From Selaginella moellendorffii (Eukaryota > Plantae > Lycopodiophyta): a stretch of 64,000 bases of DNA. The notes below the pieces were generated by a model. It was given only the letters and a program-made list of their open reading frames with translations, searched no databases and was not told where the DNA came from. Of the stretch, positions 685 to 59,793 are shown piece after piece; position 1 is the stretch's first letter; every line of letters begins with the position of its first letter. Both the position numbers and the translations under genes were made by a program. The stretch lies in the NCBI RefSeq assembly GCF_000143415.4, contig NW_003314301.1, positions 530,336-594,335 on the forward strand, written 5' to 3'.

Positions 685-1560
685 ATGTTTGTGTACAAGT
701 TTATACTTTATTATTTATTTTTTAAAAATGTATTTTCAATCACCTATGAATGGGGAGATAATGGACCAGGGAAAAACTTAGAGGAGCAAGATATTAATAA
801 TATTATAAATGGATTTCATAGACTTATAAGAGATATTGATTATTATAGATATTATTCTACAACATATCAAGATTTAACTCTAATAGAAACTTCACGAGGA
901 ATTATTTGTGCTAGGATAAAACGATTTGAGCATCAATCGAATACTTGTGGAACAGGTAAGGTAACTAATACAGTGATTAAAGGAATAAACTTGATGCAAC
1001 GCTTAAACCCATTAGTTCAAAATAATCATGAAGCAATGGTTTTAAATCGTGCAAGCTCAGCTAAAATCACATCAATAAATTATCAAATACAATATTCTAT
1101 GGCAGTATGGTGGTCACAACAACCACCGCTATTTATATATAATATAAGAAGTCAAAATTCAAAAGACTGTGATATTGCAAGTAATACACTTGAAAGTGGT
1201 AGTCAACTTTTATACAAGGGAGATTTCTTAATATCTCCAAATGGAAATAATATTTTATTATTAGAATCTGAATGTAATTTAGTATTATATTCAGAAAGAA
1301 ATAAAATTTGGGATACTCCAATAAATATGAATTATAATAATTGTTATTTAAAAGTTCAAAATGATGGTAATCTTGTAATATATTCATATAAAAAAGAGGT
1401 TATATGGGCAAATAATTTTTATTGCCGTTATCAACCAAATTGCCTATTATTTACATATTATACTTTGCAAAATGATTGTAATTTTATTGCTTATAAAGTT
1501 GAATCACCAAATAATATTTGGTGGTCTTCAAAAACAGCAAATCACAAATTATGTAAGTAA
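685..1560 (+). CDS. Secreted protein: unknown N-terminal domain plus C-terminal bulb-type (B/GNA) lectin domain
   Basis: Intronless 291-aa ORF with a hydrophobic N-terminus. The C-terminal ~120 aa carry B-lectin repeats (ECNLVLY, QNDGNLVIY = QxDxNxVxY, QNDCNFIAY) and end in WSSKT. Extremely AT-rich. Confidence 0.75.
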   Translation: MFVYKFILYYLFFKNVFSITYEWGDNGPGKNLEEQDINNIINGFHRLIRDIDYYRYYSTTYQDLTLIETSRGIICARIKRFEHQSNTCGTGKVTNTVIKGINLMQRLNPLVQNNHEAMVLNRASSAKITSINYQIQYSMAVWWSQQPPLFIYNIRSQNSKDCDIASNTLESGSQLLYKGDFLISPNGNNILLLESECNLVLYSERNKIWDTPINMNYNNCYLKVQNDGNLVIYSYKKEVIWANNFYCRYQPNCLLFTYYTLQNDCNFIAYKVESPNNIWWSSKTANHKLCK

Positions 1561-5274: not shown

Positions 5275-7488
5275 TTAAGAAGTTCCAGTGTTCATGTGGT
5301 TTAAGCCGAGCTCCTCGTTTTGCTCCCAGGAGCGCTCGTATTCTCGAACTAAACGCATGAAAACGATCGTTTAGAAATCACCAATGACGAAAGAAAAGTT
5401 CACTCACCAGATATTTGATTGTCATCGCTTGAAGAATCCGTACATGGAGCGATGAATGAATTGCCAAGGGAATCATCCAAAACAAGCGTCCATGACTTTT
5501 TCAATTCCAGTAACTAGAGTCGTTAAAACACAGCACATAGTCAGCCAAAAAACCAACAAAAGTATACATGACTTACATCTTGCAATTTGGCATCAAATTC
5601 CATCCACTTTTGTCTTGTGACAATCTCCGCACTGTCTCCGATTTCAAATCCATGGACACTCTTGAGCTCTTGAAGATAATTCAATACGTCAGAAACACTG
5701 CTTGATCGGAGAGTGCTTACTTGCTTTCAGAGATTGTCTTGACTAGTCCTTCGACTGTCGTGACGAGACCGCCAAGTGTTCCGGGCATTAGTTCAAGTTC
5801 CACCTCCGGAATCTCTACTCCCGCTGTGTCTGACTAATCGGAAAAGATTAAAAAAAAAGAAGGTATATCACTACCATAAACATTGCAAGAACTTCTTACT
5901 TTGATCAAGTCTCTTGTCAAGTCTATTTGGTTTTCCACGGCGAGAGATATTTTCTTTCCTTTAGCTGATATGCTTCCACCAGGTTTCACCTAAGTGTAAG
6001 ATGATTTTCACAACAAAGAACCAAAAACAGAAGCTTACTTCGGAGTTTCTAAACCCGCAAGTATCGCAAGATGCTGCCATCACTATTACCTCCTTGAAAT
6101 ATGGTATATCTGGAACAAAGGATGAGTACTACAACGAAGGAAAGAGAAACAAAAAGAATACTTGTCATGTACATGCGTGTTTCACATCGTCCCGCACAAG
6201 CTCCACAAGTGGCTGGAAAAGTCATCACCTGTCAAAGAACCTCTGGTAAAATTCTCAGAAAAGAAAAAACAAAGTACACACCTCCTCAGGAGCCGTGTAC
6301 TTGAAAAGTGCAGCAGAAATCTGCTCGCTATTCCCCTGTGCTATAGCTTGTTGAGCAAGCTTAGCACCAACGGCCCCATGTAACTCCTCGACAACATCTT
6401 CTTCTTGCTTTCCGTCTTCGTTTTCGTGATCTACGGACAAAAACCCGAGCGACTTTTGCTGCTCATGCGTCCTGTCGTAGTGCTCGCGCAACAAAATTGG
6501 ATCCTCTTTAGGTGCATTCCTGTAGTAATGAAAACGAGGAAAAGCAAACTCAGGAAGTAAGCCAAGAAAGAAAAGACAACATACGGGTTTTCAATGAAGC
6601 TATTCCCAGATGGATCTTCCAGTGAAAATGTGAAAGCCTGTTCACCTCTAGCATACGCCCTTAACTTGAGGATAAACGCGTCTATAGAAGCCGCAGTATG
6701 AGGGTCCACTTTCTACAAGACGGAATGATACTTAACGTTTAGCGAAATAAGAGAAACAATCTTTACCCGACGCTCTTCTTGCAATCGTTCCAAATCATCT
6801 CCAGCTTTGAGGAGAACTCCTTCCACCTGTAAGTAGTAATTTTGCGTTTCGATCTTTGTCTTGAAAGTAACGTAAGGCATACTGTAGAAAGAACTCCTCG
6901 CTGGGCTTCCGGTGGCACTTCAAAATCCAACTCTGGGACCTGAGGAAAACAATAAAATAAATAAAAGAACAATCAAATAAGACATGGAATCATACCTTGA
7001 TTGTAGCCGAATCTGACTTCACTACTTGGCGATTCAAGGCCTAGAAAAAAATGTTTGAGTGGGATAACGAATCGGCTTTGTCTCACCTTTAAGTCATGCT
7101 GTGGAACACTTAATGTGAAACGGCAGCCTTGCGGTTGGAGTTGCCCAGCGAATTGTACTTCATTGTTCCTAGCAAAGAAAAAAATAAAACAAAACTTTGG
7201 AGCTACTGAAATCCGAAAGAGAGAACAAAGTTTCTAACCTCTCGTTGCAATGTGGACACTCAAACGCCATGAGAACGATCTAGATAAACCAAAATCATTC
7301 ACGGATTGCATAGTTACTATTCATACCTCTCGAAAATGGGGAATCGTCGTGAGAAGCAGCCGCGTCGTCCCCTGGAACATCAAAATCCCGCAAAATCAGT
7401 ACCAGCGCAAGTCGAAATCTCCAAAATTCGCTACATTCTCTCCGCAGGACATGCACAGGCTCTCCAGCTCGTGCGCGTCCTCCGCCAT
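5275..7488 (-). CDS. ZPR1: Zinc finger protein ZPR1
   Basis: Multi-exon. [47 protein letters not shown], a second C4 finger ([13 protein letters not shown]) and C-terminal [16 protein letters not shown]. Confidence 0.93.
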
Positions 7489-10869: not shown

Positions 10870-12579
10870 TGAGAGGACCATATGTATGGATTTCGGCATA
10901 TCATCGGACCAGCCTACCAGCCTGCTTGCCACTGTGAGATACCTTTCTCAGGAAGGCCACTGCATGATTTTCCTTGATGCTCGAAGGCTCTGCAAGAATC
11001 CGGAAGCAACTGCAAGGATTCCCCGCCATGGCCAAGCCTTTCAACGATTTCTGAATGTGTGGCCTTTCTGATGCGTTCGAAAGTAAGAGTTACGATTGTA
11101 GTAGACGGTGGCAACGTAATTTCAACAAAGAGTGGTGCTGCTGCTTTGCTAGCTGGCATTGTGAATGTCTAAAATGTAGTCTTTTGTGCTTTGCTCTCCG
11201 GTGAATGGAACGAAGTGATCCGCAATCCCAAAACCCATTTCGTTGAGCTTATAACCGAGGGACTTGAGGGCGCAGAGCTCGTGCAATTCTGCAACGTATA
11301 CCGGATCGGAAGAGATACAGTGGACTGGCGTGTCACTGGTACAAATACAAAGCTACTGCTTGTGTACGCACAGGGTGGTGACAAGTTCCAAAAGGAAATT
11401 GCATCTCTCGAGGCTGAGATCACAAGTAGGAGCTGGTACAATAAACGAGAACTTTGGCAAGGGAACTTAACTAAAGCCAAAACAATATTCAGAGCCAGTG
11501 GGAGCGAACAGATATACTGAAACACTTGACGGGAAGCTGGACGGTGGAACGTCTCACTCCACTCTTGGATTCCAGGTGCTTCTACAGGGGCCCAGATGGT
11601 ACGCTTGACTGCATTACCGATGGCTTATGGAGCTTTGCCTATGTGAAGTTGGCAGAACTCATCGAGGAAGCTGAAGTTGACAAGCAGTGCGAGCTTGTTA
11701 GAATCTGGACAGGATCAATTAACGGGGACGACAACGCTAATTCGGATCGGCTGGAATGTGGAAGAAGCTGTGATTCTGGCAGTCAAGCTCTTTGACCTCC
11801 AGATTTCATACCGCATCAACGAGGCGTTCAGCGTGAAGAACCCCGAGGTGCAGAGTTTCGGTGGACCGATGTCGGTGGATGTTCTCAACGCGTGTCGAAA
11901 GCCTTCGCCATGCATGTACCTGCCGAAGCTATTTAGCCACATTGTTTTGGATTTCTACCTTGAGTTCCAGGACATGGTGGTCGCATGGCATGTTTCAGTG
12001 GCAGAGAATGCCGAAGAACGGCACTATCGTACTGTTGAGAATGCGGAAAACCCGTTTGCAGCTGCCGGGACGAAAAAACATATTCTGCTATGGGTGATTC
12101 CATGCGAGTACTCTTCTAAGGAGGTGACTTCGGCAGTGCACCAGGGCCTCACGCACTTCTACGTCAAAATGCCTTTCGCTTCTGTGAGTAGCAAACTGGA
12201 TGTTATTGATTCAACGCTAGCGCGCATCAGGAGAGATAAGCAACGAAAGGTAAGGTTTTAGTGGTGCCTGGATTGCGCAACTAATATGGTTTGGCTGCAG
12301 GACACGGATATATGCTGCAAATGCAAGCAAACTCAAACTCCGGGAGACGTGAACTGGGTGTGCTGCGAAGTTTGCCTACTCTGGTATCACCAGAGATGTG
12401 TCGGCTACGATCCGACGCCAATTGCGAAGAGTCTTGCCGGAGAGACTGAGGTGCTTGAACCGCCTGAGTTCGCATGCCATGAATGTGGGGAGTTCATAGG
12501 GGCCAAGTCCCGTCGTCGGGGAGGTAAAGATCTCTTGAGAGCAAGAGCTGATGCAAGCGAAAACGCAAATTCACTATAA
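10870..12579 (+). pseudogene. Fragmented ORF chain ending in a PHD finger; upstream part tentatively Crinkler-like NTPase + REase
   Basis: Same-strand ORFs broken by stops and frameshifts. After intron 12250-12300 comes a C4HC3 finger (CCKC..WVCCEVCLLWYHQRC..FACHEC). Upstream motifs only resemble CR-NTPase/REase. Confidence 0.5.
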
Positions 12580-30028: not shown

Positions 30029-30995
30029 TTAATCCTTCAGGAAATTCTTGCAAAGCTCACTAAGCTGCTGCCTATCCTCTTTAGCCGCTTCTAGCGAAGC
30101 CTTTGCTTCATTGGCTTCAGTGATCTGTGAGGCAAATAGGATCAAATCCAAGTAAAGAAAAGCAACTTACCGAGAGAGCCTGCGAGGCACGACGCGATTC
30201 GATTATGTCGAGCAGCACATCCTTGGTGAACTCCGGGTGGCCTTGAATGCCAAGAATGTGATCCTCCACCGCAAACATCTCCACTCTCGTGTTCTGGGAC
30301 GAGCCAAGCAGTGTTCCTCCCGGCGGCAGCTCAAGAACCTTGGATTCAAATAGATGATCGATCCAGGCAAGAGATGATAACGAATCACACTTACTTGATC
30401 GCGATGGCTTTGCAGGACTCGCAGTCTCTTCGGGATGTTCCTTCCATATCGCTTCAGCTGAAAGTGGTCGTTAGTGTACATTTCTTTCAAGCCAACTTCC
30501 CATCCCACGGGAGCTCTTCCAGTCACTCCTCCAAGCGCGCGGCTCAAAACCTTGAAAGAAACAACCAAAGCTCGCGACCGATCATAAACTTGCAAATGCT
30601 TTTACCTGGTGGCCGAAGCAAACGCCGAGAATTCTCTTTTTCTCTTCGTGTAGATCGCAAAGAACTCCACAGAGCTGCGTGATCCATGCCTCGTTCCCGT
30701 GCGCATCGTGCGCGCTCCCAGACACAACAAAGCCACTGTAATCAGCCAATTGTTCCTCGCTGGGGAAAATCCCATCCACAATGCGGAAAGTCTCCCATGT
30801 CTCACCAGGATGGCTCAAGAGCTTGACGAGCAGCGCTCCATAGCCGCCGTGCTTGCGCTCTGTGTAATCCGTGCCATAGCCAGCCACAAACACCGCGAAT
30901 TTCTTGCCAGGAGCTCCCGCGGTGGCCGCCGCCGCCGCCACCGCTCCAGGGTGGAAGCTAGACGCGGCGGGAGAGACGAGCAGCCCCAAAACCAT
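30029..30995 (-). CDS. Class I glutamine amidotransferase / gamma-glutamyl peptidase-like
   Basis: Four exons. Catalytic triad motifs GVCFGHQ and QGHPEF; also SGSAHDAHG and SHRDQV. Confidence 0.9.
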
Positions 30996-31085
30996 GCTAG
31001 GGCTCTTCTACAAAAATGCCAGGTCATCAAACTTTAAGCCACGTCATTCAGCTATTTTGCCACATATATATACATATTATATATG

Positions 31086-31518
31086 CTATTTTCCAACGCA
31101 GTTCCCACAGTTACCAGTTTTGAGGCAATCCGGATCATTTGCATAGCAGCCGTCACAAATACAGAAATCTAAATACAGCAGAATTTTATCTTTTAATACC
31201 TCGGTTCTAGCAAATACCCTACTGAATCAAAGTGGCCAGAGGTTATTTACAAGCCCAATTGGATCTTGGGAGTTCCCACAGTAACCAATTTCGAGGCAAT
31301 CTGGATCATTTGCATAGCAGCCGTCACAAATGCAGTATTTATTGAATATTTTGTCATTGGTGTTATTGCAGTTGTGTTGAGGATGAATTTTAAAGGATTC
31401 TGAAACACCACATAAGAAATCTAGAATTTTATCTTTTCTTACCTTGAGTTCCAGTTCCATTGCTGCTAATTAGCAAGCAAAACAGTAGAACACAAACTAG
31501 AGTCCATGCCTTTGCCAT
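31086..31518 (-). CDS. Secreted Cys-rich peptide with two alternative or duplicated mature-domain exons
   Basis: Exon 1 (31518-31443) encodes signal peptide MAKAWTLVCVLLFCLLISS. Exon 2a (31399-31227) has CICDGCYANDPDCLEIGYCG. Exon 2b (31168-31086) has FCICDGCYANDPDCLKTGNCGNCVGK*. Confidence 0.7.
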
Positions 31519-31988
31519 CTTTGCTTCTTCCTTTTCTTCTGAGCAAATTGTGAGAAAGTGGTGCCATTTCATTCATGTATGTGATTTCCTGGGTTGCATC
31601 TGTGGGCACACTGATTTGTGATACCTTTCGAAAGTTGCTGAGTGGTTCTCGAGTTTTCCAAAGATGCTCAGTTTTGGCATATTAAATTTTAAGAGAAATT
31701 GCCTGCTCTACTCAATGGTTTGACTTATCTATTTAATATGTATATGATTTAATTAGTAACTATACATTTATAATTTTATTTTAAATGTATACATACGGAT
31801 TTCGATACAAATAATCTAAAATGTTACGATTTAACTTTATAAACAGTAATTATGCTAAAACTTAAAACCAGCTACAACTCCTTGCGTTTTGAAATGGACA
31901 AAACGTATGTGCTTTGTGAACTCAGCCCTGGCGCTTGTCCTTAATTACAAACATAAATATAACTCTTCAGTCCTTTCACATAAAAGCC

Positions 31989-32249
31989 ATGGCCAAGGTA
32001 TCACTTGTAATTTGTGTTTTACTCGTTTGCTTGCTGGTAAGCAGCAGCGCATCTGATCAAGGTAAGGAATGGAACATCTACTCTATCATAATATTTCCTG
32101 TCTCCATATTTTTAATCTGTGAACTAGACATGGACTCTCGTGAGATTGATCCTCAACACCACGATCATTGTATTTGTGATGGCTGCTGGGCTGGAGAAAC
32201 CGCTTGCGAGGTCAAGGGCGTGTGTGGCGAATGCGTTGGAAAAAAATAA
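31989..32249 (+). CDS. Secreted Cys-rich peptide, divergently transcribed paralog
   Basis: Signal peptide MAKVSLVICVLLVCLLVSSSAS, phase-1 intron 32062-32127, then IDPQHHDHCICDGCWAGETACEVKGVCGECVGKK*. Confidence 0.8.
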   Translation: MAKVSLVICVLLVCLLVSSSASDQGKEWNIYSIIIFPVSIFLICELDMDSREIDPQHHDHCICDGCWAGETACEVKGVCGECVGKK

Positions 32250-32775
32250 TCAAGCTTTTTAAACTGCTAATGTTATAGCAAACCAAAAGTCAATGTAATA
32301 TCAAATCCATAGTTTCGATCTTTACCTGGAGAGAAACGCTCGAGAAGTCGCTAGACAAAACAGAAAGAAGATAAACCTCAGCGAGAACTTTGAAAAGACT
32401 TTCCTGGAGGAACCGACTCTGCCTCAAGTTGTAATTCTCGCCGCCTTCGTAGAAGCCAGTTGCGATGCATTTGTCTCCCGACAGACCAAGCGCACGCACG
32501 AGAGAGAGAGAGAGCCTGTAAGAAACTACGCCCCGCGAGCTGTAAGTAAGCTGGACCACATAAGCGATAGACATGAGAAGAATTTGATAAACTTACTTGT
32601 GTTGGCGCTCGACTAGACAAGTATGCCGACCTTCCACATAAAAAACCTTTGCACGAAGCAGCGTTGTCTCCTCACCGTGTTGAGTTGCCGCGCTATAAAT
32701 TGCTCGCTTCGAAAGGTACTGGATACTTCTCTTTCTTCTCTCTGCCTTGAAGTTGTGGAATCGAGAGCTTCAGCT

Positions 32776-33075
32776 ATGGCTAGAATTCCTGCTGGCTGCT
32801 TCTTCCTGATGGTAGTGCTGCTTCTCCAGATGCTCGCCGGTGCTCGATCGGCTTGTAACCAGGCTGAAATCTACGAGAAGTGTGTCCCCTGTGTCAAGTT
32901 TGGGTCCGTCATGGAGAAGCCCGACGTCAACTGTTGCAACGCCGCCAAAACGATGACTCCCGACTGCTTCTGCAGCATGCTGATTGCCACCAAAGGACGA
33001 CGAGCAAATTCGGTGATGAAGTCTTACGTTTCCAGCTGCAAGTTTCGCGTTGCTCCAGGCTTCAAATGCTACTAA
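32776..33075 (+). CDS. nsLTP / prolamin-superfamily 8-cysteine protein
   Basis: Signal peptide followed by C..C..CC..CxC..C..C (NCCN, DCFCS, SCKFRVAPGFKC), plus one extra Cys. Confidence 0.75.
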   Translation: MARIPAGCFFLMVVLLLQMLAGARSACNQAEIYEKCVPCVKFGSVMEKPDVNCCNAAKTMTPDCFCSMLIATKGRRANSVMKSYVSSCKFRVAPGFKCY

Positions 33076-33196
33076 GTAGAGGTCTTCCTTCCTTCTTGAT
33101 GTCTCTTTTTTTTTTCCATGTTCCTGTACATGTTGTCAGTGCTCTCTACTCTTGAACAAAGCAATAGAAAGTAAATATCTTACCTGAATGATCGAT

Positions 33197-36100
33197 CTAT
33201 CTCTCCATCATGTCGTCTGACGGCAGGCTGACTTTCTCGCTCTGTTGATCCGTCTTGTCGGTTAAGAGGAGAAGCTGCTTGGACTCCTCCTCCTCTCTGA
33301 GCAAGCTTTCTTGCAGGAGCTCGAGAAAAGCCACGACTTTACCCATGGAAGGACGTCTTGAAGGCCAATCGGAGGTGCAGTGAAGCGCCAGTTGCATCAT
33401 TTGCACTAGAACTGGTCCCGAAGAGGGGCTCAAAGACACGAGCTCGCTGTCGAAAGTTTCCATGCCTTTGCCTTGCTGGTTCATAGCTTTCACCCATGTA
33501 GTCACGCTTACAATCTCTCCCAGGTTCCCCAAGACGAGTGGCTTTCTTCCCGTGAGCAGCTCCAGGAGAACGATGCCAAAGCTATACACGTCTGTTTTCT
33601 CCGAGAGTCTGCACGTCGAAACCACCTCCGGGGCGATATATCCCAAAGTTCCGGCTATGCCTGTCGTGAGATGAGTGGCATTGTTCTCGACGAGCCTCGC
33701 CAGTCCAAAGTCGGCGATGTGAGGCTCCATGTCCGAGTCTAGTAAAATGTTGCTCGACTTCACGTCCCGGTGGATGATTCTAGGCGAGCAGCCTTCGTGC
33801 AAGTAGAGTAGGCCTCGAGCAGTCCCCACAGCAATTCTAAGACGAGCCATCCAGCTTAACAACGTTGATGGAGAGGCAGAGGCGACACCACCACCGTGGA
33901 GCACGTCGTGCAAACTTCCACATGGCATGTAGTCGTAAAACAGGAGTTTTTCCTGAGCGCTGCAGTAGAACCCCTTGAGCGACATCAGGTTCCTGTGCTT
34001 GATGAGACCAAGAGTGCTTATCTCCGCTTCAAAAGATGGATCATTCGCAACGTTCTCGTTTCGCAGCCGCTTCACTGCCAAGTGCGAGCCATCGGGTAAA
34101 ACTGCATCGTAGACGGCTCCAAAGCCGCCCTTTCCCAGCAAGTGGGAATCGTCAAAACCGCCTGTTGCAGCAACGATGTCGTCGTAGTCGCAAACAAAGT
34201 TGTTGACGAACACCACCATCTTGCCGGGAACATTTTCTGACGGATCATACGTGACTTGAACTGGACGCAAATGGAACCACTTGGCCAGCAAAACAACGAA
34301 GACCAGCACCGCCAACACTGCCACAGCCGGCCCGAGTACTGTAAGCCATTTCTTCCAGTTGTGAAAGTCTGCAAGCGTGTTAGCAGCCTCCCCTGTTGGA
34401 TCTGCTGCTGAACACCTCGGGAAAGGGAGCGGAGGACCGCAGAGCCCGGTGTTTCTAGTAAAAGAATCCGCCTGGAACCTCAAGAAACTTCCGAGTCTCG
34501 GTATCTCCCCAACAAGCCCGTTGCTCGAGAGGTTGAGGAGCATCAAACTAGAGCAGTTGCAAAGAGTTGGCGGAATTGTACCAGTGAAGTTGTTCTTGTC
34601 CAGCAGCAGCACCCTTAAGAACAATAGAGAGCCAAGACTCGAAGGTATGTTGTCGGACAGTCGGTTAGAGCTCAGGACAAGCTCGCGAAGGTCACGTATC
34701 GCACCGACTCTGGCAGGAATGCTACCGGAAAGCATGTTTCCTTCCAAGTTCAGCACCTGTAGTTGAGCTAGCGAGTCCAAAGTTGGAGGTATGACTCCCG
34801 TCAGCTTGTTGTGGGCCATGCTTGCGAATTGGAGAATAGGAAGTGTTGTCAACTCCGTCGGAATCGAGCCTTTGAGAGCGTTATCGTTGAGAGCCAGGGA
34901 TAGAAGGCTCTTGCAGAGCCCGATTTGCGGTGGAATCTTGCCTGTCAACCCGTTGAAGCTCATGTCTAACGTTTGAAGGTGCGTCAACAGGCCGAAACTT
35001 TCTGGTATGGTGCCTGTCAACCTGTTGTGTCCCAGCCGGATAGCAATTAAGCCCGAGCAGTTCCCCAAACTCGACGGTACTTTGCCTTCAAGTTGGTTGT
35101 TTTCCAAAACCAGAGAAGCCAGGAACGAAAGGCTACCGAGCTCCTCTGGAACAGTGCCCGTCAGGAGATTATCCGCAAGGTTGAGCACCGTCAAGAGCGA
35201 GCAGTTCCCAAGCTCGGGTGGAACAGGGCCAGAAAGATAATTTCCGCTCAAGTCCATGGCCGACTGGTCCGAAACAAAGTGGACGTGCTCTGGAAGGCTG
35301 GAGTAGAGAGGAAACTGCAGCAGACCGAGTTCTGGTGGGATTGCACCGCTTAAAGAATTGTTGTTGAGGAGAAGCTGCGACAGCCCGGTTAGAGAGCTCA
35401 GTTCTCGAGGAATTGTACTTGTGAGGTTGTTGTTTCCCAGGTTTAAAAACCGCAGCGACCGGAGCTGTCCAAGCTCCGGAGGAATACTTCCTTGAAGCTT
35501 GTTTTGCTGAAGAAAGAGTGCCTGCAAGTTTGGGAGGAAGCCGAGCTGCTTTGGAATGGAGCCCGTCAACTCGTTGAAATCGAGGTCCACCTGAGTGAGC
35601 ATTTTGAGGTGCTCGAGGTCCGCTGGAATGTGTCCACTCAAGCTGTTGTTAGGAAGGTACATGAGCCGTAGCGAAAAGAGGAGGCCAACCTCGTATGGAA
35701 TTGCTCCAGAAAGCCGATTGTATCCCAGTGACAGTACCTCCAAGCGAGAGAGAAGAGAAATATCTGGAGGGATCGGGCCGGACAGATTGTTGAACTGCAA
35801 GTCGAGATGAACCAACGACGTCATGTTCCCGAGCTCTGGAGGAATGCCGCCCGAGAGCTGGTTGGAGCTAAGTTCCAGAATCTCCAAGCTCTGTAAGTTT
35901 CCAATCTCTGGAGGGATCGGACCCTGGAGATTGTTGGAGAAGAGCCTGATAGCCGGAGGCCCGTTGAAGTACGCGTTGGTCGGATTCGAGGAGCAATACT
36001 TTTGAAGACAAGGCAGAAGGCCAATCTCGGGTGGTATCAATCCCGACAAATTGTTAGAGTCGAGGTAGAGCACGCGTAGCACCGGAAACGATCCAATCGC

Positions 36101-37004
36101 AGGAGGGATGGAACCCGAGAGACTGTTCTCCGACAGCACCAGAGCTTCCAAGTTGGTCAGGTTGGCGAGTGTTTCAGGGATGCTACCTGTGAGCTCGTTG
36201 GAGAAGAGTAGAAGAACTGCCAGCTTCTTGAGCCTGCCTAGCTCCGGTGGTATCGGTCCAGTGAGATAGTTGCTGTGGAGGTAGAGTGCCTCCAGGGCCG
36301 TTAAGTCGCAGAGCTCGGCTGGAATCTTTCCAACAAGCTGGTTTTGCTGGAGATAGAGCACTGTAAGCTGTGTCAAGTTCCCAATCTCTGGAGGAATAAC
36401 ACCAGTGAGGCTGTTGTTTGCAAGTGAGAGTGCCTAGAAGATGGCAAAGTCAGAACAAACTCCAAAGAATAGAGAGAACTTTTTTATTCTTCTTGAATGA
36501 AAACCATACCTTGAGCTTTTGAAGAGATCCAAGCTCCACTGGAATCGTTCCCCACAGGAGATTACTCGAGAGATCGAGCGATACCAAGTTTTGGAGAATG
36601 CTGAGCTCCACTGGGATTCTCCCCGAAAGCCTGTTCCCGGGAAGAGCTAGCTTCTCGAGCTTGGAGAGAGAGCCAATATCACCCACCAGGAAGCCACCAT
36701 CGAGAGAAGCCTTTGGCAGCACGATCGACACGACTTGGACGAGGCCAGTGGAGTTGTCCCGGTGGCATTTGATCCCCACCCAGCCCTGCGCGCCGCAGGG
36801 CGTCCCCTTGGATGGATCCCAGCTCACCAGATGCTCGGCCATGTCGTTCCAGGCGGATTTGAGCGCCAGTAGCGCCCACGTCTCCTCCTCCACCTCGAAG
36901 CTCTTGATCGGGTCGGCATTCTCGTCCACAATCTCGCTCCCTGCAGCGCATATCACGAATCCCAGGGTTAGAATCGCGATGAAAGGCGCCAGATCGCTAG
37001 TCAT
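33197..37004 (-). CDS. LRR receptor-like kinase (long LRR ectodomain, TM helix, RD kinase; LRR-X/EMS1-like tentative)
   Basis: Signal peptide, PC..WVGIKC cap, more than 25 LxxLxLxxNxLxGxIP repeats, GLCGPPL cap, [31 protein letters not shown]. One intron at 36434-36509. Confidence 0.93.
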
Positions 37005-37354: not shown

Positions 37355-40300
37355 TTACACGTCGCCGAGATGGAGAACTTGGAATGGAGCTCTCTCCACC
37401 GGATTGGGAGAAGCAGCCTCAAAATTCTTGGCAGTGGCATCGAAGTTCTTGATCGCAGCGCTCAAAGCAATGCTTGGAACGTTTTCTTTGCCATCGAAAT
37501 CGATGCTCTCGCGTCTAAGTTACAAAGAAAAACTTTAGAAAGCTCTAAACCAAAGAAGCTACGTACCTCGGACTTTCATCACACACTTTGCTTGCTGATA
37601 GTGAGCTTCTCCTGCGAGGAAGATGAAAGAAATGTAAATCTTTGCAGGAAAGAAAGCTAGTGGTTTGATCGACTAAGTACCTCGAAGAACGCACGGAGCT
37701 GACCGGCGAGGCGTCGTCCTTGCCAATCTCCAGCAGCGCTTTTCCCTCCTGGAGAAGATTTTCGTGGAGCATGAGCATCTGCTGGACCAGGCATTTGCCG
37801 TTGAGCTGCGCCCTCTGAAGCTCGCACTGGATCTCTTTCAGCTTGCTGCTGGTGATGGACGCATCCTCGTGAGAGATCGACAAGTCCCACTCGAGTCTCT
37901 CGATCTCCTTCTCGAGCCTGCGTTTTTCTACCCGGTAGTCCTCGATGCTGCCCGCGTCCTTGTCGTGCTCGAGCTTTAGCTGACTTAAGCACGACTCCAA
38001 GTCCAAAAGCTCCTCCTCTTTCACTTTCACCTCGTTTTCCAGCTCCGCACACCTGTTTTTGAGTTGCACTCGTTCCCGTTCGGCTCTTTCGAGGTTGGCC
38101 TTGGCTTTGGACACCTCGATGAGTCCCAGCTGCTGTACTGCCCACTCCGATGCGTCCAGCCTCTCATCTTTGTCTTGAGCAAATGCCATGAGCTGCGCCA
38201 GCATGGACTCCAGTTCCTTGATCTTGGCATTCGCTCCTTCCATCTTTGAACTGATCTGATTCCCAAGATCAACTTTGAGCTGCAGGCCCGAAACCATCTC
38301 CTTGCTCGATGCAAGCTTGGACTCTGCGCTGGTCAAGTCGCTGAGAAGCTGTTGTCCTCTTGCTTCGCTCCTCTTCAACTCTTCGGCAACCTTCGAGACC
38401 TTCACTTGCAAGCTTTGGACCGTAAAGTCCAGGTGGCTGTTTTTCTCAGTGAGATGCTGGATCTCTTCTTTCGCACAAGCTAGCTGGCTCTCCCGGTTGC
38501 CAAGTTCCTTGACCACAAGGTCCATGTCTGCAGACTTCGCATGGAGCTGGTCAACACCTTCCTTCAGCTGAAACTCAGTGGCAGATAGCCTCCCTTTCAA
38601 GGCTTCCACCTGCTGAGCGCTTTCGGCCCGTAGAGAGACCAATTCCTCTTCCCGGGAAGCCAAAGTCACGCCGAGAAGATCGCGCTGAGCCTTGCAGCTA
38701 TCCAACTCCGCGACCGTCTTCATGAAAGAGCTCTCCATTATCTGAAGAGCCGTCTGCATGGCTTCGGCTGCCTCTCTCTGAACCTTTGCTTCCAGCTCCG
38801 TACGACTTAAGGTAGCACACTTGTCTTCGAATGACGATGAAAGTTTCCCGAGCTCGCTGATAAGATCCTCCTCCCTTATTCGCCAGCAATTCTTCCTGTC
38901 CTCCAGTTCAACCATAGCCTGCTTAAGCCCAGTGATTCGTTCCTCTGATTCTCTTTTCTCCCTGCAAGCGACTTCCAAAGCTTCCTCCGTCTCAGCCAAT
39001 TTTGTTTCGACCGTCGCAAGCTTTTCGTCCAGAGCTGACCATTCCGCTTGTCGCGCCTTCAGGGAAGCTTCTAAAGCCTCAATGCTCGTTCTTGAAGTTT
39101 CGGCTGCCGAGTCCAGTGTCACCTTAAGGTCACGGAGCTCGCGAAGTTCGTCACTGATGCAGCAGAGCTGAGACTCTTTCTCCTCAAGAACCTTGGACAT
39201 GAGCTCCATCTCTTGATCTCTCATGTTCAAACAGCTCCAAGCGTCTGTCAGTTGAGAATCGGATATCGAGAGCTTCTCCCGGAGAAGCTGAGCTTCCGAA
39301 GCTGCTGCTGTCCGTAATTCCTCCTGCTCCTGCTGGCTTGAGCTCAATGCTGATTCCAATGCATTGCGTTCATGCATGCAACGCTGCAACTTTCCAACCT
39401 CTTCCTGCAGAGATGACTCCAAGTCTTGGCATCTTGCTTTCAGCCTGTCTACCTCCATAACAACAGATTCCAAAGCAGCATTTCGATCTTCAAGAGAAGA
39501 GGACAGTGCAAACACTTCGTCCGTAAGAGCGCGTTCTTTCTTCTCCCAGTCGGATTTTCGGATCTCAAACTCAACCAGCGATTGCCTGAACCTTTGAGCC
39601 TCCTGCTGCAAGTTCTCGTTGTCCTCGAGTAGAACTGTAAGTTCTTCATCCTTTTTAGTCAGGCTGTTCTGCGATTGCGTAAGTTTCTCTGAAAGATCCA
39701 GCAGCTGTGCTGCAGATTCAGCCAAGCGAGAGTCCAGTGTCTTCTGTAGGCGCTGTGCTGTTGTGTTGAGCTTTTTGTTTTCTCGTCGTAATTGTTCGAC
39801 CTCTTCGGACATGGCCCCGAGCTTCTCGTCTTTGATGTTCGCTTCATTCGTCAAAGCCTCCAGTTCTTCGGTCTTCGTCTTCAACCGACTGGCTAATGTT
39901 TCTAAGCGCGACTCGACCGCTGAGAGCTGCAAAACCTTCTGTTGTCGCTCATTCTCATCCTGTAGTGCTTTCAACTCTCCTTCACAAAACTCGAGAGAAG
40001 TTTGAAGATCCTCACACTTCTTCCGGTAGCACTTGAGCTCCTCAACCTTTTCTGTCAAACAGGTTGCCAGCTCCTTACATCGTTCCTTTGCATCCCTTGC
40101 GTCCTTGGTGGCAGATTTCAAAGCGGCGCATTTTTCTTCGAGAGAAATAGCGAGCTCCTGAACCTGACGAGTAAAGCTTTCCTCCTGTTTGATCCATTCA
40201 GCTTTCCTTTGCTCAAACTTCTGCACGGTCTGTTTCAGCAGCTCATTCTGCTCGACCAAAGTCTTCCTGGTTTTCAGTAGCGACTGCAGCTCTTCCTCCT

Positions 40301-40985
40301 TCTCACCAAGCTTCCCATGCAAAACGCTCACATTTGCTTCCAAGCTCGTTACTTCGGCTTCTTTCACGCACAGGCGTTTGCTCTGACCAGCTACTGTCTC
40401 TTCGAGTCTCTCGATCGTCGACTGCATGCCACGAGCTTTTTCGCGAAGCTCGACAACATCTTCGTTGAAAGAAACGAGCTGTGTATCTTTGCTCTGGACG
40501 TCCTTCTTCAATGCCTCGAGCTCCACATCCTTTGCTCGAGTTCTCTGCTCGAGGGTCTGCTCCAATGCCCGACACAGCTCCCTGTGCTTCGCAGCATCGG
40601 CAACAGCATCACCCAAAGCACCAAACTTCTCCTCTAGCGCGAAAGATAGCCTCTGGATCTCTTTGAGCGAAGCCTCTTCCTTCTCTACCGACAAGCTTCT
40701 CTGCCTCTCGAGGTCCTTCACAGCGTCACATAGCCCATCAATCTGCTCGCGAAGGGACTTGTTCTTTGCAGCCAATGCCGTTGTCTCGTCCTCCTTCTCG
40801 CCCAATCTCCCCTCCAAGCCTAAGATTTCCACTTCTTTGCGACCCAACCCCGATTCCAGCCCCCGGATCCTCTCCTCGAGCCCACCCAAGGCCGATTCTA
40901 AAACCCTATTCCTCTGCCCGAGGCGGAGTACCTGATCGTTGAGAGCCGCGATCTCCCCGTCCTTGCTCTCGAGCAGAAGATCCAT
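37355..40985 (-). CDS. Long coiled-coil protein with a C-terminal KEN and D-box-like tail
   Basis: ~1100 aa heptad-rich exon. Two short 3' exons predicted from GT-AG sites end ..DGKENVP..ERAPFQVLHLGDV*. 5'-UTR intron at ~41010-41076. Confidence 0.7.
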
Positions 40986-41253
40986 TGCCCCCAAATTTGT
41001 CAGCTACACCTGCGACCAAAAGATTTCAAGCGCCGAGCTGAGCTCCAGATCTAAGCAATGCGCGAATCCATCGTACCTCTAGGCGTCGGCGCCGCATCCA
41101 CGCGCCACCGCTTCCTCTCGCCAAGCCCTAGCGACGAGATCTTCCCGCTTTAGCAGCCATTTCGAAAATGCTCTATCCCGAGGTTAAGGTTAAAAGAAAA
41201 GCTTTGTATTAACTTAGGTGTAATAAAACATTCAGTTTAAGAAAAACTCTTTT

Positions 41254-43916: not shown

Positions 43917-45001
43917 AACTTTTCTCAAAGGTATTTTGCTCTCGAATTTTACTTCGTGTGTTGAAGTTCTTGATTAACATAGTGGTTTCTGTTTTCGTTG
44001 CAGACGATGTACTCTCATTTTGGACGTGTGGAGTGAAACCCTGGTGGCAAACCATGGTACCTCAAAGGAGTAGCCGATGTTACACGTAATCGAGGGAGCA
44101 GCGGAGGCACACTGATATTATCAACGCTGAGGTACTAAGGGGGCGATGGCCAGAAAAAATCTAGCTTCTGGTCAGGCCTCACTGGAACTCGAGGAAGCGG
44201 CAAGACGCTATAGGCCCATTGCCATTTTGAAACTTCAGGGGAAGAGTTTTTAAGTAAGCTTGCACTTAAAATGTTGATAAAAGACAACACACCTATAACA
44301 AAAATGCACACTTGAGATTTTTTATTTTTAATAAACAGATATAAACATTGTGAATTAAGCTGATGGGACACAAAGGTTATAGTGATTGAATGGCAGCTCC
44401 TCATCATTCTTTTCCATTTGGTTTGAGCCATCTTCATGTTAAGCCATCACAGACTGATAATATTAACAAAAATTCAGGAAGTAGTGATCCTCTTGACTGT
44501 GTATTCCGCAATTCGGGAAAATGGAGGTGAGTAACCTGGTTTCTTCTTTCTTTTCCTTCTTTTATTGAGGGATTAAACCGGGTTGTGTACAACTGAAGCA
44601 ACGTTTCCACCATTTCTGGCAAGAGCTGCGCCAAACCCTGTGGCTCCATGTATGTCTGATGTGCAGGACCACTGCCGCGATCGCCACCGTCAGCGCGTAA
44701 ATTCATTGTGCTTGATGCGTAGACTAAACAGTTGCCCTGACTAAACAAGGATGGCCGTGAAGTCACTTCTAAGAATTCTGGTGCCACCCTTGTAATATGG
44801 TGACTTTGACTATATGACTTATTCATACCATTGTAAAAATTTAATTGTGAGTGGAAATTTGTGGACAATTCAAAGTCTTGTGATGAAAATAATATGGTCA
44901 ATTCAAGCATGCAAGAACTTCGATATATAAGTATAACGCGAGTTCTTGATCCAAACAACACGGTGAAGTCACCCAATTCAAAGCTTCTAGATTTCTAATT
45001 G

Positions 45002-46552
45002 ATGGAGTTGGCACTCTCTAGTTTCCTGCTTCCTTTTCTCTTACTAGTGCTCACCGGAGCTCTTAGCATTCTGGTCACTTTGTGGGATAAAAAGAAGAAT
45101 TTGCCCCCATCTCCAGGATGGGCACTTCCATTGATCGGCCACCTTCATCTCATTAGGAAGCAGCCACATCGATCTTTGCAAGCACTCTCCAAAAAGTATG
45201 GGCCAATTATGTTCTTGAAGCTTGGGATGGTCCCAAGCATCATTGTCTCCAGCCCAGAGATGGCGAAAGAAGCTCTCACGAACAATGGCTTGGCATTTGC
45301 TTCGAGGCCATATCTCTTGGTCTCCGAGATTATTGGGTATAATTTCCAAAACATTGGGATACACTACAGCGAGCACTCAAGGAGGCTGCGTAAGATGTGT
45401 GTGACTGAACTTATTGCTCCCCAGAAACTGGACTCCTCCTTGTGGGTGAGGCTCCAAGAACTCTCGAGAGCGTTTCGTATCTTACAACAGTCTTACGAGG
45501 AAAAGGTGGCTGTCGACATGAGGTATCTCTTCTCAACTTTCACATTCAACGCCTTCACAATGATTCTGATGAGCAAGAGATACTTTGGGGACACCACTGA
45601 TGATCATGATCAACACATGGAGCTTAAACATGTTATTAACGAAATCTTCAGCCTGACAATCAAGTTCCACATCACCGAATTTGTTCCATCGCACCTCAGG
45701 CGCTTTTTCGAATGGGTCGATCCGACCATCCCTCAGTTCAAGAGATTGCACGAGAAGCAAGACAAGTTCATGAAGAAGATCATCGAAGAACACAAAGAGT
45801 CAACTGATCGTCCCAAAGACTTCATGGACGCACTGCTCGAGAGTTTCGATGCAGAAGCCACTGTAAAAGCGTTTATAACAGTAAGTTCACTCCACATATA
45901 AACTCATTCCTTATACCATCGTGGTTGACAGGAGTTGTTGCTAGCATCTGATTCAACGGCCGTGGCTGCTGAATGGGTGATGGCACAACTTCTTCACAAT
46001 CCTCATGTTTTGGAGAAAGCTCAACTCGAGCTCAACCTTGTCGTGGGTCCAAATCGCCTGGTTCAAGAGTCTGATTTCTCAAAGCTCGAGTACTTTCAAG
46101 CAATCATCAAGGAAACCTTGAGGCTTTGTCCTCCAGGTCCGCTCCTCATTCCTCGCAGCTCGGACGTCGCTTGCACGATTGGTGGCTACTACGTTCCCAA
46201 AGGCTCAACACTTTTTGTCAATGCTTTCGCCATTGGACGCGATCCAAGTATCTGGGAACGCCCCACAGAGTTCATGCCCGAGAGATTCCTTGGGAGATCA
46301 GTGGATTTCAAGGGCCAGCACTTCGATCTCATACCATTTGGATCGGGGCGGAGGATGTGTCCTGGGATGCCACTCGCATTGAAAGCGCTTGAGCTGCTCT
46401 TGGCTAACTTTGTCCATGGATTTTATTGGAGCTTCCCTCCCGGAGAGATCCAAACTCTTGAGGATTGCTTCGAGACGACGCTGGTGCTCAAGTCTCCTCT
46501 AAAACTCCTGGCAGTTCCAAGACATTCAGCGTCTGTTTATGCTGAAATCTGA
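45002..46552 (+). CDS. Cytochrome P450, CYP71 clan (A-type)
   Basis: Membrane anchor, LPPSPG hinge, KETLR, FMPERF, heme motif FGSGRRMCPG. Single intron at 45881-45931. Confidence 0.93.
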
Positions 46553-57495: not shown

Positions 57496-59793
57496 ATGAG
57501 AAGGCTGGCCAGAGGACTCGCTACAGACTGTGCAAGCAACCAGCTAAACTTGAGAGAGTACCTCGATTCGAAGCTATGCTCCTCCGACGTCTTCACTCTG
57601 GCTCGTCTCATCCGCGAATGTGGTTCTCTGGGAAACCTGCTAGATGCACAAAAGATTCACAGTCACGTCGTAGAGTCTGGCTTTCAGGAAAACTTTTACC
57701 TGCGTGAACGTCTCGTCCACATGTACCTCAAGTGTGGCAGCGTAGAGAACGCCGAGGACGTCTTCTTGGACAGGAACAGGATGGCTCACTTCCGAGACGT
57801 CACGACGTGGACGGCAATGTTGTCCGCGTACTCTCGTCAATCCAGCAGCAGCACCAAGGTGCTCGAGTTCTACTGCCAGATGCTCCAGCACGGTGTCAAG
57901 CCCGACAGTTTCACTTTCACAGCCGTGTTGAAAGCCTGCGTTTCTGTGAAGAGAGCGTTGAGTGGCGGCAAGGCGATCCACTTCCAGATCTTAGAGAGCG
58001 GGCTAGAGGACGACGAGATCATCGGAACTTCGGTCGTGAGCATGTATGGGAAGTGCAGCAGCCTGGCTGATGCTCGAGCCTGGTTTGATGGAGTTTGTGT
58101 CCGACGTCCGCATGGAGTGGTGTTGTGGAACGCCATGATCTCGGCTTACGTCCAGAACGGCTGCTGTGGACAGTCCTTGGAGCTCTTCACGCTGATGCTC
58201 TTGGAAGGCGTCGCCCCAAACAGTGTCACGTATGTCACAGTTCTCAATGCTTGCAGCTCTACGTTGACGCTGGGTATTGGCAAGGCGGTTCACATCTGTG
58301 TTTGCGATCTCGGCCTCGAGTCGGACGTCATCCTTGGAACCGCGCTGCTCAACATGTATGGCAAGAGCGGGAAGCTGGACGAAGCCCGGAAGATCTTTGA
58401 AAGGATCGAAGCTCCGGACTTGGTGTCGTGGAACTCGATGATATCGGCTCTTGTCCGGGACAGCCAAGGAGACGGTGCTCGGACGTTGTTCAAGCAGCTA
58501 CTTCTGGAAGGCCTCAGTCCAAATGAGATCACTCTCATCTCTACTATCAATGCCTGTGCTTGTCCGGAAGATTTGACAGAAGGAAAGCTGATCCACGCTT
58601 GCAGCTGTGAAAGTGGCCGGGCGTCGGTACTCTTCGTGAGGAATGCTCTCGTAGACATGTATGGAAAATGCGGCTGTCTAGAGAAAGCTCGCGAGCTGTT
58701 TGAATCTGAAACAGTGGAGAGGAACTTAGTCAGTTGGAGCGTCATGGTGGCGGCTTACGCAGAAAACGGTCACGGTCACGAGGCCCTGCAGCTCTTCAGG
58801 ATGATGATTCTGGAGGGTGAAAGCCTCGACTCGGTCGTCTTTGTCAACGTCCTCAATGCTTGTTCTTCGGCAGGAAACGCTGCTGCGGGAGAAGCTCTTC
58901 ATGGGAACTTAGTTGAGGCTGGATTCGAGTCGGACGTAGTAGCGGCAACGGCACTCGCAAACATGTATATCAAGTGTGGACGTTTGGAAGACGGGCGACG
59001 TGTTTTCGACAGAATGGAGGCCCGGAACGTTGTTAGCTGGAACACCATGATCTCGGGCTATGCTCAGAACGGTCGTCCCAAAGAAGCCTTGGAACTCTTT
59101 CACCAAATGGATCCCGGAGTTGCTGACAAACGGACGTATGTAGCAGCACTGGATGCTTGCGCCTGCTCAGTGGCTGCAACCGAAGGGAAACTTATACACC
59201 AGCAAATACTTCAGCAGAAGATGAGCGTCGACGTAATCCTGGGAACGGCCATTGTCAACATGTATGGAAAATGTGGTTGCTTGAGCGAAGCCCGGGAGTT
59301 TTTTGACAGTATACCTCTTCCCGACGTCGTCACTTGCAATGCCATGATAGCTGGTTATGCTCAACACGGCCACCTCAGAAAAGCTCTTGGTCTGTTCGCC
59401 AAAATGAAGCAGGAGGGAGTGAGACCCGACGGTGCCACCTTTGTTAGTGTTCTGTGTGCTTGTAGCCATGCTGGTAACTTGAAAAAAGGATCCGAGTTCT
59501 TCATATCAATGCTGGTCGATTACGAGTTTAAGATTTCTGCTGAGCACTGTGGTTGCATGCTGGATCTGCTGAGCCGGTCAGGAATGCTGCGTGAAGCAGA
59601 GGAGCTCCTAAAAAAGTATCCGACTTCAGCCAGAGACACCGAGTGGATAACGTTGCTGGCCGCGTCTAAGACTCAGAGTGATGCAACCGTGGCTCAAAAC
59701 GCAGCAGAGGGCCTTATGAACTGCCGCCCCGAGAGCTCTTTCCCATACGTCGTGCTTTCCACTGCTTTGAGCACTGATGAGGAGGCTGCCTGA
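57496..59793 (+). CDS. PLS-class pentatricopeptide repeat protein, E subgroup (no DYW domain)
   Basis: Intronless 765 aa with repeated MYGKCG/VSWNxMI motifs. Ends LCACSHAG..HCGCMLDLLSRSG..W..LL..PYVVLS, with no HxE/CxxC deaminase. Confidence 0.92.
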   Translation: MRRLARGLATDCASNQLNLREYLDSKLCSSDVFTLARLIRECGSLGNLLDAQKIHSHVVESGFQENFYLRERLVHMYLKCGSVENAEDVFLDRNRMAHFRDVTTWTAMLSAYSRQSSSSTKVLEFYCQMLQHGVKPDSFTFTAVLKACVSVKRALSGGKAIHFQILESGLEDDEIIGTSVVSMYGKCSSLADARAWFDGVCVRRPHGVVLWNAMISAYVQNGCCGQSLELFTLMLLEGVAPNSVTYVTVLNACSSTLTLGIGKAVHICVCDLGLESDVILGTALLNMYGKSGKLDEARKIFERIEAPDLVSWNSMISALVRDSQGDGARTLFKQLLLEGLSPNEITLISTINACACPEDLTEGKLIHACSCESGRASVLFVRNALVDMYGKCGCLEKARELFESETVERNLVSWSVMVAAYAENGHGHEALQLFRMMILEGESLDSVVFVNVLNACSSAGNAAAGEALHGNLVEAGFESDVVAATALANMYIKCGRLEDGRRVFDRMEARNVVSWNTMISGYAQNGRPKEALELFHQMDPGVADKRTYVAALDACACSVAATEGKLIHQQILQQKMSVDVILGTAIVNMYGKCGCLSEAREFFDSIPLPDVVTCNAMIAGYAQHGHLRKALGLFAKMKQEGVRPDGATFVSVLCACSHAGNLKKGSEFFISMLVDYEFKISAEHCGCMLDLLSRSGMLREAEELLKKYPTSARDTEWITLLAASKTQSDATVAQNAAEGLMNCRPESSFPYVVLSTALSTDEEAA

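Follow-up and report, generated by a model that had tools for sequence, protein, structure and literature searches.

Candidate genes for small, putatively secreted peptides with six cysteines in an undescribed spacing in the lycophyte Selaginella moellendorffii

Plant defensins and defensin-like (DEFL) peptides carry eight (or six) cysteines, with a CxxxC in the helix paired with a CxC in the last strand. Loop 1 of knottins is normally three residues or longer, and these peptides typically have either a CC pair or a CxC late in the sequence. Metallothioneins are cytosolic proteins without a signal peptide, very rich in cysteines arranged in CxC and CxxC clusters and containing few or no aromatic residues. 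The window analysed here, a stretch of 64,000 nucleotides from Selaginella moellendorffii (RefSeq assembly GCF_000143415.4, contig NW_003314301.1, positions 530,336 to 594,335 of the forward strand), contains two divergently oriented loci with three copies of a compact six-cysteine domain. It is judged probable, at roughly 0.6, that these are lineage-restricted ('orphan') S. moellendorffii genes for small secreted cysteine-rich peptides. The case is built on gene anatomy, the three domain copies, their pattern of conservation and the lack of detectable relatives, and from these we infer secretion, disulfides, processing and any activity.

The hallmarks of a two-exon plant gene for a secreted cysteine-rich peptide are present: a signal peptide, a small mature region, an even number of conserved cysteines and an intron between signal and mature peptide. 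The predicted organisation would be the usual plant layout, in which exon 1 supplies the signal peptide and, after a phase-1 intron, exon 2 supplies the mature peptide. A close parallel is offered by the DEFL and nodule-specific cysteine-rich (NCR) genes of plants, in which a short first exon likewise encodes the signal peptide, an intron marks where the signal peptide ends and exon 2 encodes a small mature peptide with conserved cysteines and hypervariable loops. These genes, too, undergo local duplication and birth-and-death evolution and are poorly annotated (PMC3924332, together with general background knowledge). In contrast to the DEFL peptides with their cysteine-stabilised alpha-beta (CS-alpha-beta) fold, the Selaginella peptides lack the CxxxC...CxC signature, match neither Gamma-thionin nor any other Pfam family and are anionic.

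Of the three domain copies, the one in the plus-strand gene alone has the full architecture. The parts of this gene are as follows.

31989-32249, plus strand: whole plus-strand peptide gene, two exons, a clean model
31989-32061, plus strand: exon 1, MAKVSLVICVLLVCLLVSSSASDQ plus one base, comprising a 24-codon signal peptide and the first base of codon 25
32062-32127, plus strand: intron of 66 nt, GTAAGG..CTAG (GT..AG), phase 1
32128-32249, plus strand: exon 2, an acidic, His-rich segment, then the six-Cys domain, then the stop

The signal peptide, assigned by eye as in the minus-strand gene, begins with MAK, continues with a hydrophobic core of 14 residues and ends in a small-residue c-region, SSSAS. 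The start codon has a purine at -3 and a G at +4. Exon 2 reads (D)MDSREIDPQHHDH-CICDGC-WAGETA-C-EVKGV-C-GE-C-VGKK-stop, which gives a cysteine spacing of C-x-C-x2-C-x6-C-x5-C-x2-C. Its pro-segment ends in REIDPQHHDH, placing three histidines next to the first cysteine, and in the domain copies a W or Y directly follows the third cysteine. The intron is stop-free and in frame, so that an unspliced product of 86 amino acids is also open (open reading frame (ORF) 31935-32249).

TGYATHTGYGAYGGNTGY, the pattern coding for the motif CICDGC, is matched exactly three times in the 64-kb window, at 32169-32186 (plus strand), 31317-31334 (minus strand) and 31146-31163 (minus strand), where about 0.16 matches to the coding pattern would be expected by chance even with up to two mismatches. 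The original prediction described two divergently transcribed genes with a common architecture. The common elements stand: both loci have a signal-peptide exon, a GT..AG phase-1 intron at an equivalent codon, an I-(D/H)-P-Q-H block and the CICDGC-x6-C-x5-C-x2-C-VGK domain. The minus-strand 'gene', however, merged two tandem copies of exon 2, and the domain occurs three times rather than twice.

Only the coding blocks of the plus- and minus-strand genes can be aligned. The signal exons form an inverted repeat with 73% identity over 67 nt. The highest nucleotide conservation in the gene is found in the I-x-P-Q-H block (16 of 18 nt identical); the CICDGC block retains 17-18 of 19 nt and the C-x2-C-VGK end 18 of 21. 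Introns and 3′ flanks of the two genes give alignment scores at or below those of shuffled controls. The start codons are separated by the following element.

31519-31988, strandless: spacer between the start codons, presumed bidirectional promoter, 470 bp, AT-rich, 33% GC

When its two halves were compared they scored 21 against 14.7±2.3 for shuffles (maximum 22), indicating no significant likeness. Synonymous divergence (dS) in the Cys domain ranges from about 0.75 (plus versus distal minus copy) to 1.3 (plus versus proximal minus copy), with a ratio of nonsynonymous to synonymous divergence (dN/dS) of about 0.4-0.55; these selection statistics are drawn from 21-25 codons. For the signal exon dS is 0.53 and dN 0.30. 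Codon positions 1, 2 and 3 carry 6, 7 and 13 differences, respectively, and 15 of 25 residues are identical, all six cysteines among them (p=0.028). While neutral sequence was randomised, both lineages kept the start codon, the signal peptide, the splice donor, each of the Cys codons and the position of the stop. This combined pattern is stronger than the single statistics; it points to long-term constraint on the coding parts and suggests purifying selection on a real two-exon gene.

On the minus strand the arrangement is more complex.

31518-31443, minus strand: exon 1, a 25-codon signal peptide with a CAAG/GTAAG phase-1 donor at the codon matching the plus-strand gene
31442-31400, minus strand: proximal intron of 43 nt, GTAAG..TTTCAG, out of frame and with stop codons inside
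31399-31227, minus strand: proximal copy of exon 2, with IHPQH, a 10-residue insert, CICDGC-x6-C-x5-C and an altered end
31180-31201, minus strand: relic of the exon-1 end and intron start, 91% identical to 31423-31444
31168-31086, minus strand: distal copy of the Cys domain, with all six cysteines and CVGK-stop kept, lacking the pro-segment and a signal exon of its own

The minus-strand intron, being out of frame and interrupted by stops, has to be spliced out to join the signal peptide to the Cys domain, and this obligatory splicing supports the intron model of both genes. The insert of the proximal copy relative to the plus-strand gene comprises ten residues, one of which is an additional cysteine. 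Its domain reads CICDGC-YANDPD-C-LEIGY-C-GN, then SQDPIGLVNNLWPL-stop; the end, CGNSQDPIGLVNNLWPL-stop, includes a new 14-residue tail. The proximal copy owes the loss of its sixth cysteine and VGK to two changes relative to the distal copy, G>C and a deletion of 5 bp. The distal copy reads (D)FCICDGCYANDPDCLKTGNCGNCVGK-stop and has the ancestral C-terminus. Upstream of it lies a candidate acceptor, tatttag/AT, in phase with the donor of exon 1.

The tandem copies form a direct repeat with 92% identity over 65 nt and a dS of about 0.19; they are younger than the plus/minus pair, and their lesions are recent. The relic upstream of the distal copy indicates that the duplicated unit ran from the end of exon 1 through the intron to exon 2. 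A later deletion joined the intron to the distal Cys domain and left the candidate acceptor in phase with the exon-1 donor. Exon 1 could be spliced to either copy. Splicing to the proximal copy would yield a predicted precursor of 83 amino acids with a non-canonical set of six cysteines, and splicing to the distal copy one of 53 amino acids with the canonical domain directly behind the signal peptide. A three-exon, two-domain minus-strand gene was considered and rejected: the proximal exon has no in-phase donor of plausible consensus, and a good GTAAAT donor within it is phase 0 and would frameshift the distal exon.

In the proposed history of the locus, an old inverted duplication gave rise to the two head-to-head genes. 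The minus side later underwent a tandem duplication of the unit that runs from the end of exon 1 to exon 2. Decay then took complementary courses, the proximal copy losing the last cysteine and VGK and the distal copy losing the pro-segment and the signal exon. Birth and decay of exons are seen here within about 450 bp, from inverted gene duplication to tandem exon duplication with complementary lesions.

Searches for relatives of the domain, which did not extend to the DNA of the relevant plant genomes and transcriptomes, were negative throughout. None of the three copies matches any Pfam family at E<=1, in a set that includes the models for defensin, thionin, cyclotide, hevein, GASA, EPF, RALF and metallothionein, and no chain among the PDB sequences matches the domain profile at E<=10. 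A word-index protein search with the 40-residue exon-2 product gave no candidate, and one with the in-frame unspliced ORF of 86 residues, which would catch spliced products too, gave nothing. Exact look-ups of five ORF versions in the protein collections found none of them. A profile of the three domain copies had 0 matches at E<=0.001 among 1.84 billion representatives, a null that for a profile of 40 positions excludes close relatives and not distant ones. A scan of JGI metagenomes returned 130 pattern matches, none of which was confirmed. In the Atlas, the look-alikes of the domain all score below 0.9 and are uninformative; those with a family include zinc-ribbon and LIM types and serve as leads only. 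Rfam has no matches anywhere in the window. No described family with the spacing C-x-C-x2-C-x6-C-x5-C-x2-C was found in the literature, where CxCxxC is used almost only for metal-binding sites, e.g., those of metallothioneins and polyomavirus small t. A match to a described family had been named beforehand as the finding that would speak against novelty; it was looked for in Pfam, in the PDB and with the profile search, and none was found. The proposal of a new family of disulfide-rich secreted peptides thereby survives the Pfam, PDB, word, profile and metagenome searches, all of which were null.

The loop lengths argue against other six-cysteine scaffolds. Knottins and cyclotides resemble the Selaginella peptides in having six cysteines within about 26 residues of a secreted product, but the Selaginella loops of 1, 2, 6, 5 and 2 residues lie outside their usual ranges, and neither Pfam (including its Cyclotide family) nor the PDB provides a match. 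A six-cysteine pattern without a CC pair likewise fits none of the thionin, hevein-like, snakin/GASA, EPF/EPFL or RALF types, again with no Pfam match. The earlier statement that the spacing corresponds to none of defensin, thionin, hevein, snakin, EPF, RALF and cyclotide agrees with both the Pfam result and the loop lengths.

A duplicated pseudogene or a proto-gene, decaying or never functional, unexpressed and with its ORFs as mere leftovers, is an unlikely explanation, though one to be taken seriously. Standard annotation is known to miss small two-exon peptide genes, and does so routinely (PMC3924332), which lessens the weight of the fact that the peptide genes are absent from the RefSeq annotation of S. 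moellendorffii and from all searched protein collections. That annotation was covered, as the pentatricopeptide repeat (PPR) ORF of the window is present exactly in NCBI and UniRef as an S. moellendorffii RefSeq protein; the neighbouring gene for a lipid-transfer protein (LTP)-like product is absent as well. The clear lesions of the minus-strand locus and the AT-richness of the region, which has 33-44% GC compared with about 52-57% in its neighbours, would also suit a pseudogene. At a dS of about 0.75-1.3, however, the non-coding parts have been randomised, yet the start codon, the signal peptide, an identical donor, all Cys codons and the place of the stop have been kept. Such retention is unlikely without selection for most of the history of the pair.

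Several points weigh against functional orphan peptide genes. Neither the spliced nor the unspliced product has an entry in the protein collections. The family is tiny, with two genes and three domain copies at one location, and its selection statistics, given so few codons, are each weak singly. A three-disulfide fold is assumed; AlphaFold2 modelled the Cys domain with an uninformative pLDDT of 50. The minus-strand gene in particular may be a pseudogene: its 43-nt intron is very short, and the stop of the distal copy abuts a TATA-like stretch of the next gene, leaving no room for a private 3′ untranslated region and making the distal-exon model less comfortable.

If the orphan genes encode secreted peptides, the precursor would enter the endoplasmic reticulum and the signal peptide would be cut after the small-residue stretch. 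The domain of about 26 residues would then fold with three disulfides, carry an acidic, His-containing N-terminal extension and act in the apoplast. The conserved I-x-P-Q-H block may serve in processing or recognition, and cleavage there is purely conjectural. The peptide would presumably act by binding something, be it a receptor, an enzyme or a metal.

The charge of the products bears on the kind of activity. The original prediction suggested an antimicrobial or signalling role, and a classical cationic, defensin-type antimicrobial peptide would agree with a small, secreted-type, Cys-rich product of a fast-evolving duplicated gene with variable loops between the cysteines. Net charge is nevertheless negative in all copies, at -5 (plus-strand exon-2 product), -4 (proximal copy) and -2 (distal copy), and at -1 when the plus-strand Cys domain is taken by itself. 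No CS-alpha-beta, knottin, thionin, hevein or snakin pattern and no Pfam match is found in them either. The antimicrobial guess is weakened by these charges and is now improbable. As the peptides are anionic, a binding role, as a signal, an inhibitor or a binder of metals or other ligands, is favoured over membrane-disrupting antimicrobial action.

Metal binding in its stricter form, in which CxCxxC, CxxC and the His-rich segment (PQHHDH-CIC) of a secreted peptide coordinate Zn or Cu instead of or beside forming disulfides, is very improbable. The literature use of CxCxxC, the zinc-ribbon and LIM types among the Atlas look-alikes (all below 0.9, as leads only) and the three histidines adjoining the first cysteine of the plus-strand peptide speak for it. 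The signal peptide, on the other hand, would route the product to the oxidising environment of the secretory pathway, and conserved cysteines present there in even number normally pair as disulfides. The run of histidines is not conserved, the minus-strand copies having 2 and 0, and no metallothionein or zinc-finger family in Pfam is matched. Plant and fungal metallothioneins and CxCxxC metal sites share with the Selaginella peptides the CxC and CxxC motifs and a Gly/Lys C-terminus. In contrast to metallothioneins, the Selaginella peptides begin with a predicted cleavable signal peptide, contain only six cysteines, include both aromatic and aliphatic residues in the domain and have no Pfam match.

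If the orphan peptide genes are expressed, they would enlarge the secreted-peptide repertoire of plants by a scaffold that is unusual in its negative charge and whose cysteine spacing has not been described. The scaffold would come from a lycophyte, a lineage in which such peptides are almost unstudied. They would also provide a further example of small secreted-peptide genes missed by the S. moellendorffii reference annotation.

The flanking genes are the following.

30582-30995, minus strand: first exon of a class-I glutamine amidotransferase-like (GATase-like; GGP-like) gene, PF00117 weak at E 0.0034, below the family cut-off
32776-33075, plus strand: non-specific lipid-transfer protein (nsLTP)-like gene, single exon, 99 aa, secreted, unannotated, with CC and CFC motifs
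33197-37004, minus strand: leucine-rich repeat (LRR) receptor-like kinase (RLK), complete, 1243 aa; exon 1 36510-37004, intron 36434-36509 (76 nt), exon 2 33197-36433

The kinase has an LRRNT domain, more than 20 LRRs, a transmembrane segment and an RD-type kinase domain, with Pfam matches to LRRNT_2, LRR_1/LRR_8 and Pkinase at E 4e-43 to 5e-65. Two irregular non-LRR insertions are seen in its ectodomain. Its closest solved relatives are GSO1/SGN3 (best), MIK2, FLS2 and PEPR1. The original prediction placed the 3′ end of an LRR-RLK within 1 kb; the stop of the kinase (33197) does lie 948 bp from that of the plus-strand peptide gene, and the region holds the whole kinase rather than its end.

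Cysteine-rich peptides can be ligands of LRR receptor kinases, as in the case of EPF with ERECTA/TMM and LURE with PRK6/MIK. GSO1, MIK2, FLS2 and PEPR1 are known mainly for extended linear-peptide ligands, MIK2 being also linked to the cysteine-rich LURE1. A linked ligand-receptor module was proposed for this locus, in which the six-Cys peptides would be ligands of the adjacent 1243-aa kinase and the genes would be kept together like SCR/SP11 and SRK at the Brassica S locus. What the locus offers in favour of the proposal is adjacency, with 948 bp between the two stops; the kinase is intact, with a long ectodomain and an RD kinase domain, and background knowledge provides a precedent for Cys-rich peptides as ligands of such receptors. 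The SCR/SP11-SRK, EPF-ERECTA and LURE-PRK6/MIK pairs do offer a likeness in that their Cys-rich secreted peptides are receptor-kinase ligands, and the S locus also in the physical linkage of ligand and receptor. The Selaginella locus differs from the S locus in showing adjacency only and in the class of the kinase, SRK being of the S-domain type. The plus-strand peptide gene is separated from the kinase by an unrelated LTP-like gene, the genes differ in orientation, the closest solved ectodomains are known (from background knowledge) mainly for linear-peptide ligands, and no homologues in which linkage could recur were found by the profile search or in the metagenomes. Unrelated genes are densely packed in the window (B-lectin, P450, PPR, a large coiled-coil ORF, GATase, LTP-like and RLK), so that a kinase within 1 kb is unremarkable; the LTP-like, LRR-RLK and GATase-like genes are ordinary neighbours in a gene-dense genome. 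With nothing beyond adjacency in such a mixed region, the module is hardly credible. Were it true, it would represent a linked pair of Cys-rich ligand and receptor kinase in a lycophyte, S-locus-like and arisen independently of seed plants. The present evidence provides no new mechanism and no support for a ligand-receptor supergene.

The protein encoded at 32776-33075 is probably a divergent nsLTP-like protein. Its cysteine pattern, C-x9-C-x2-C-x13-CC-x10-CFC-x21-C-x9-C, is the eight-Cys motif of nsLTPs with one extra cysteine; the eight-Cys LTP-like gene reported earlier is probably right in kind, and the mature part has 9 cysteines. It has no Pfam match at E<=1 and no word-level homologue and is absent from the protein collections. 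In the Atlas, 27 of its 30 nearest clusters are LTP_2/Tryp_alpha_amyl (score 0.90, 199-203 shared features). A single-sequence AlphaFold model has a pLDDT of 70, and 9 of its 10 best Foldseek matches are nsLTP or DIR1, with weak E-values of 0.6-5; in VIA-align, 69-72 residues superpose at about 3 Å with Z 4.1-4.9. A TATAAAT box lies about 80 bp upstream of the ATG.

In the GATase-like gene the motifs GVCFGHQ and GIQGHPEF are visible. Its ATG (30995) lies 90 bp from the stop of the distal peptide copy, precisely as had been noted for a GGP-like gene. At 31040-31085, just upstream of this ATG and abutting the stop of the distal peptide exon, a TATA-like AT run is followed by ACGTGGC, which resembles a G-box or abscisic acid-responsive element (ABRE). 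Because these promoter elements of the GATase-like gene abut the distal peptide stop, the two transcription units would overlap.

Further along the window, an open frame of 1149 aa at 37545-40994 (minus strand), rich in E, K, L and Q and coiled-coil-like, ends about 540 bp from the start of the kinase. The PPR gene (57496-59793, plus strand) encodes a single-exon protein of 765 aa with an exact S. moellendorffii match in NCBI and UniRef; a second member of 765 aa, on another scaffold and in the same 90% cluster, probably represents the other haplotype. At 685-1557 (plus strand) lies an ORF with a B-lectin domain that may belong to an S-domain receptor kinase, and at 44999-45898 (plus strand) an exon of a cytochrome P450. 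Three stop-free segments on the plus strand (7052-7156, 11085-11189 and 12262-12366) contain 7-8 cysteines per 35 residues and may be parts of other Cys-rich genes or products of chance.

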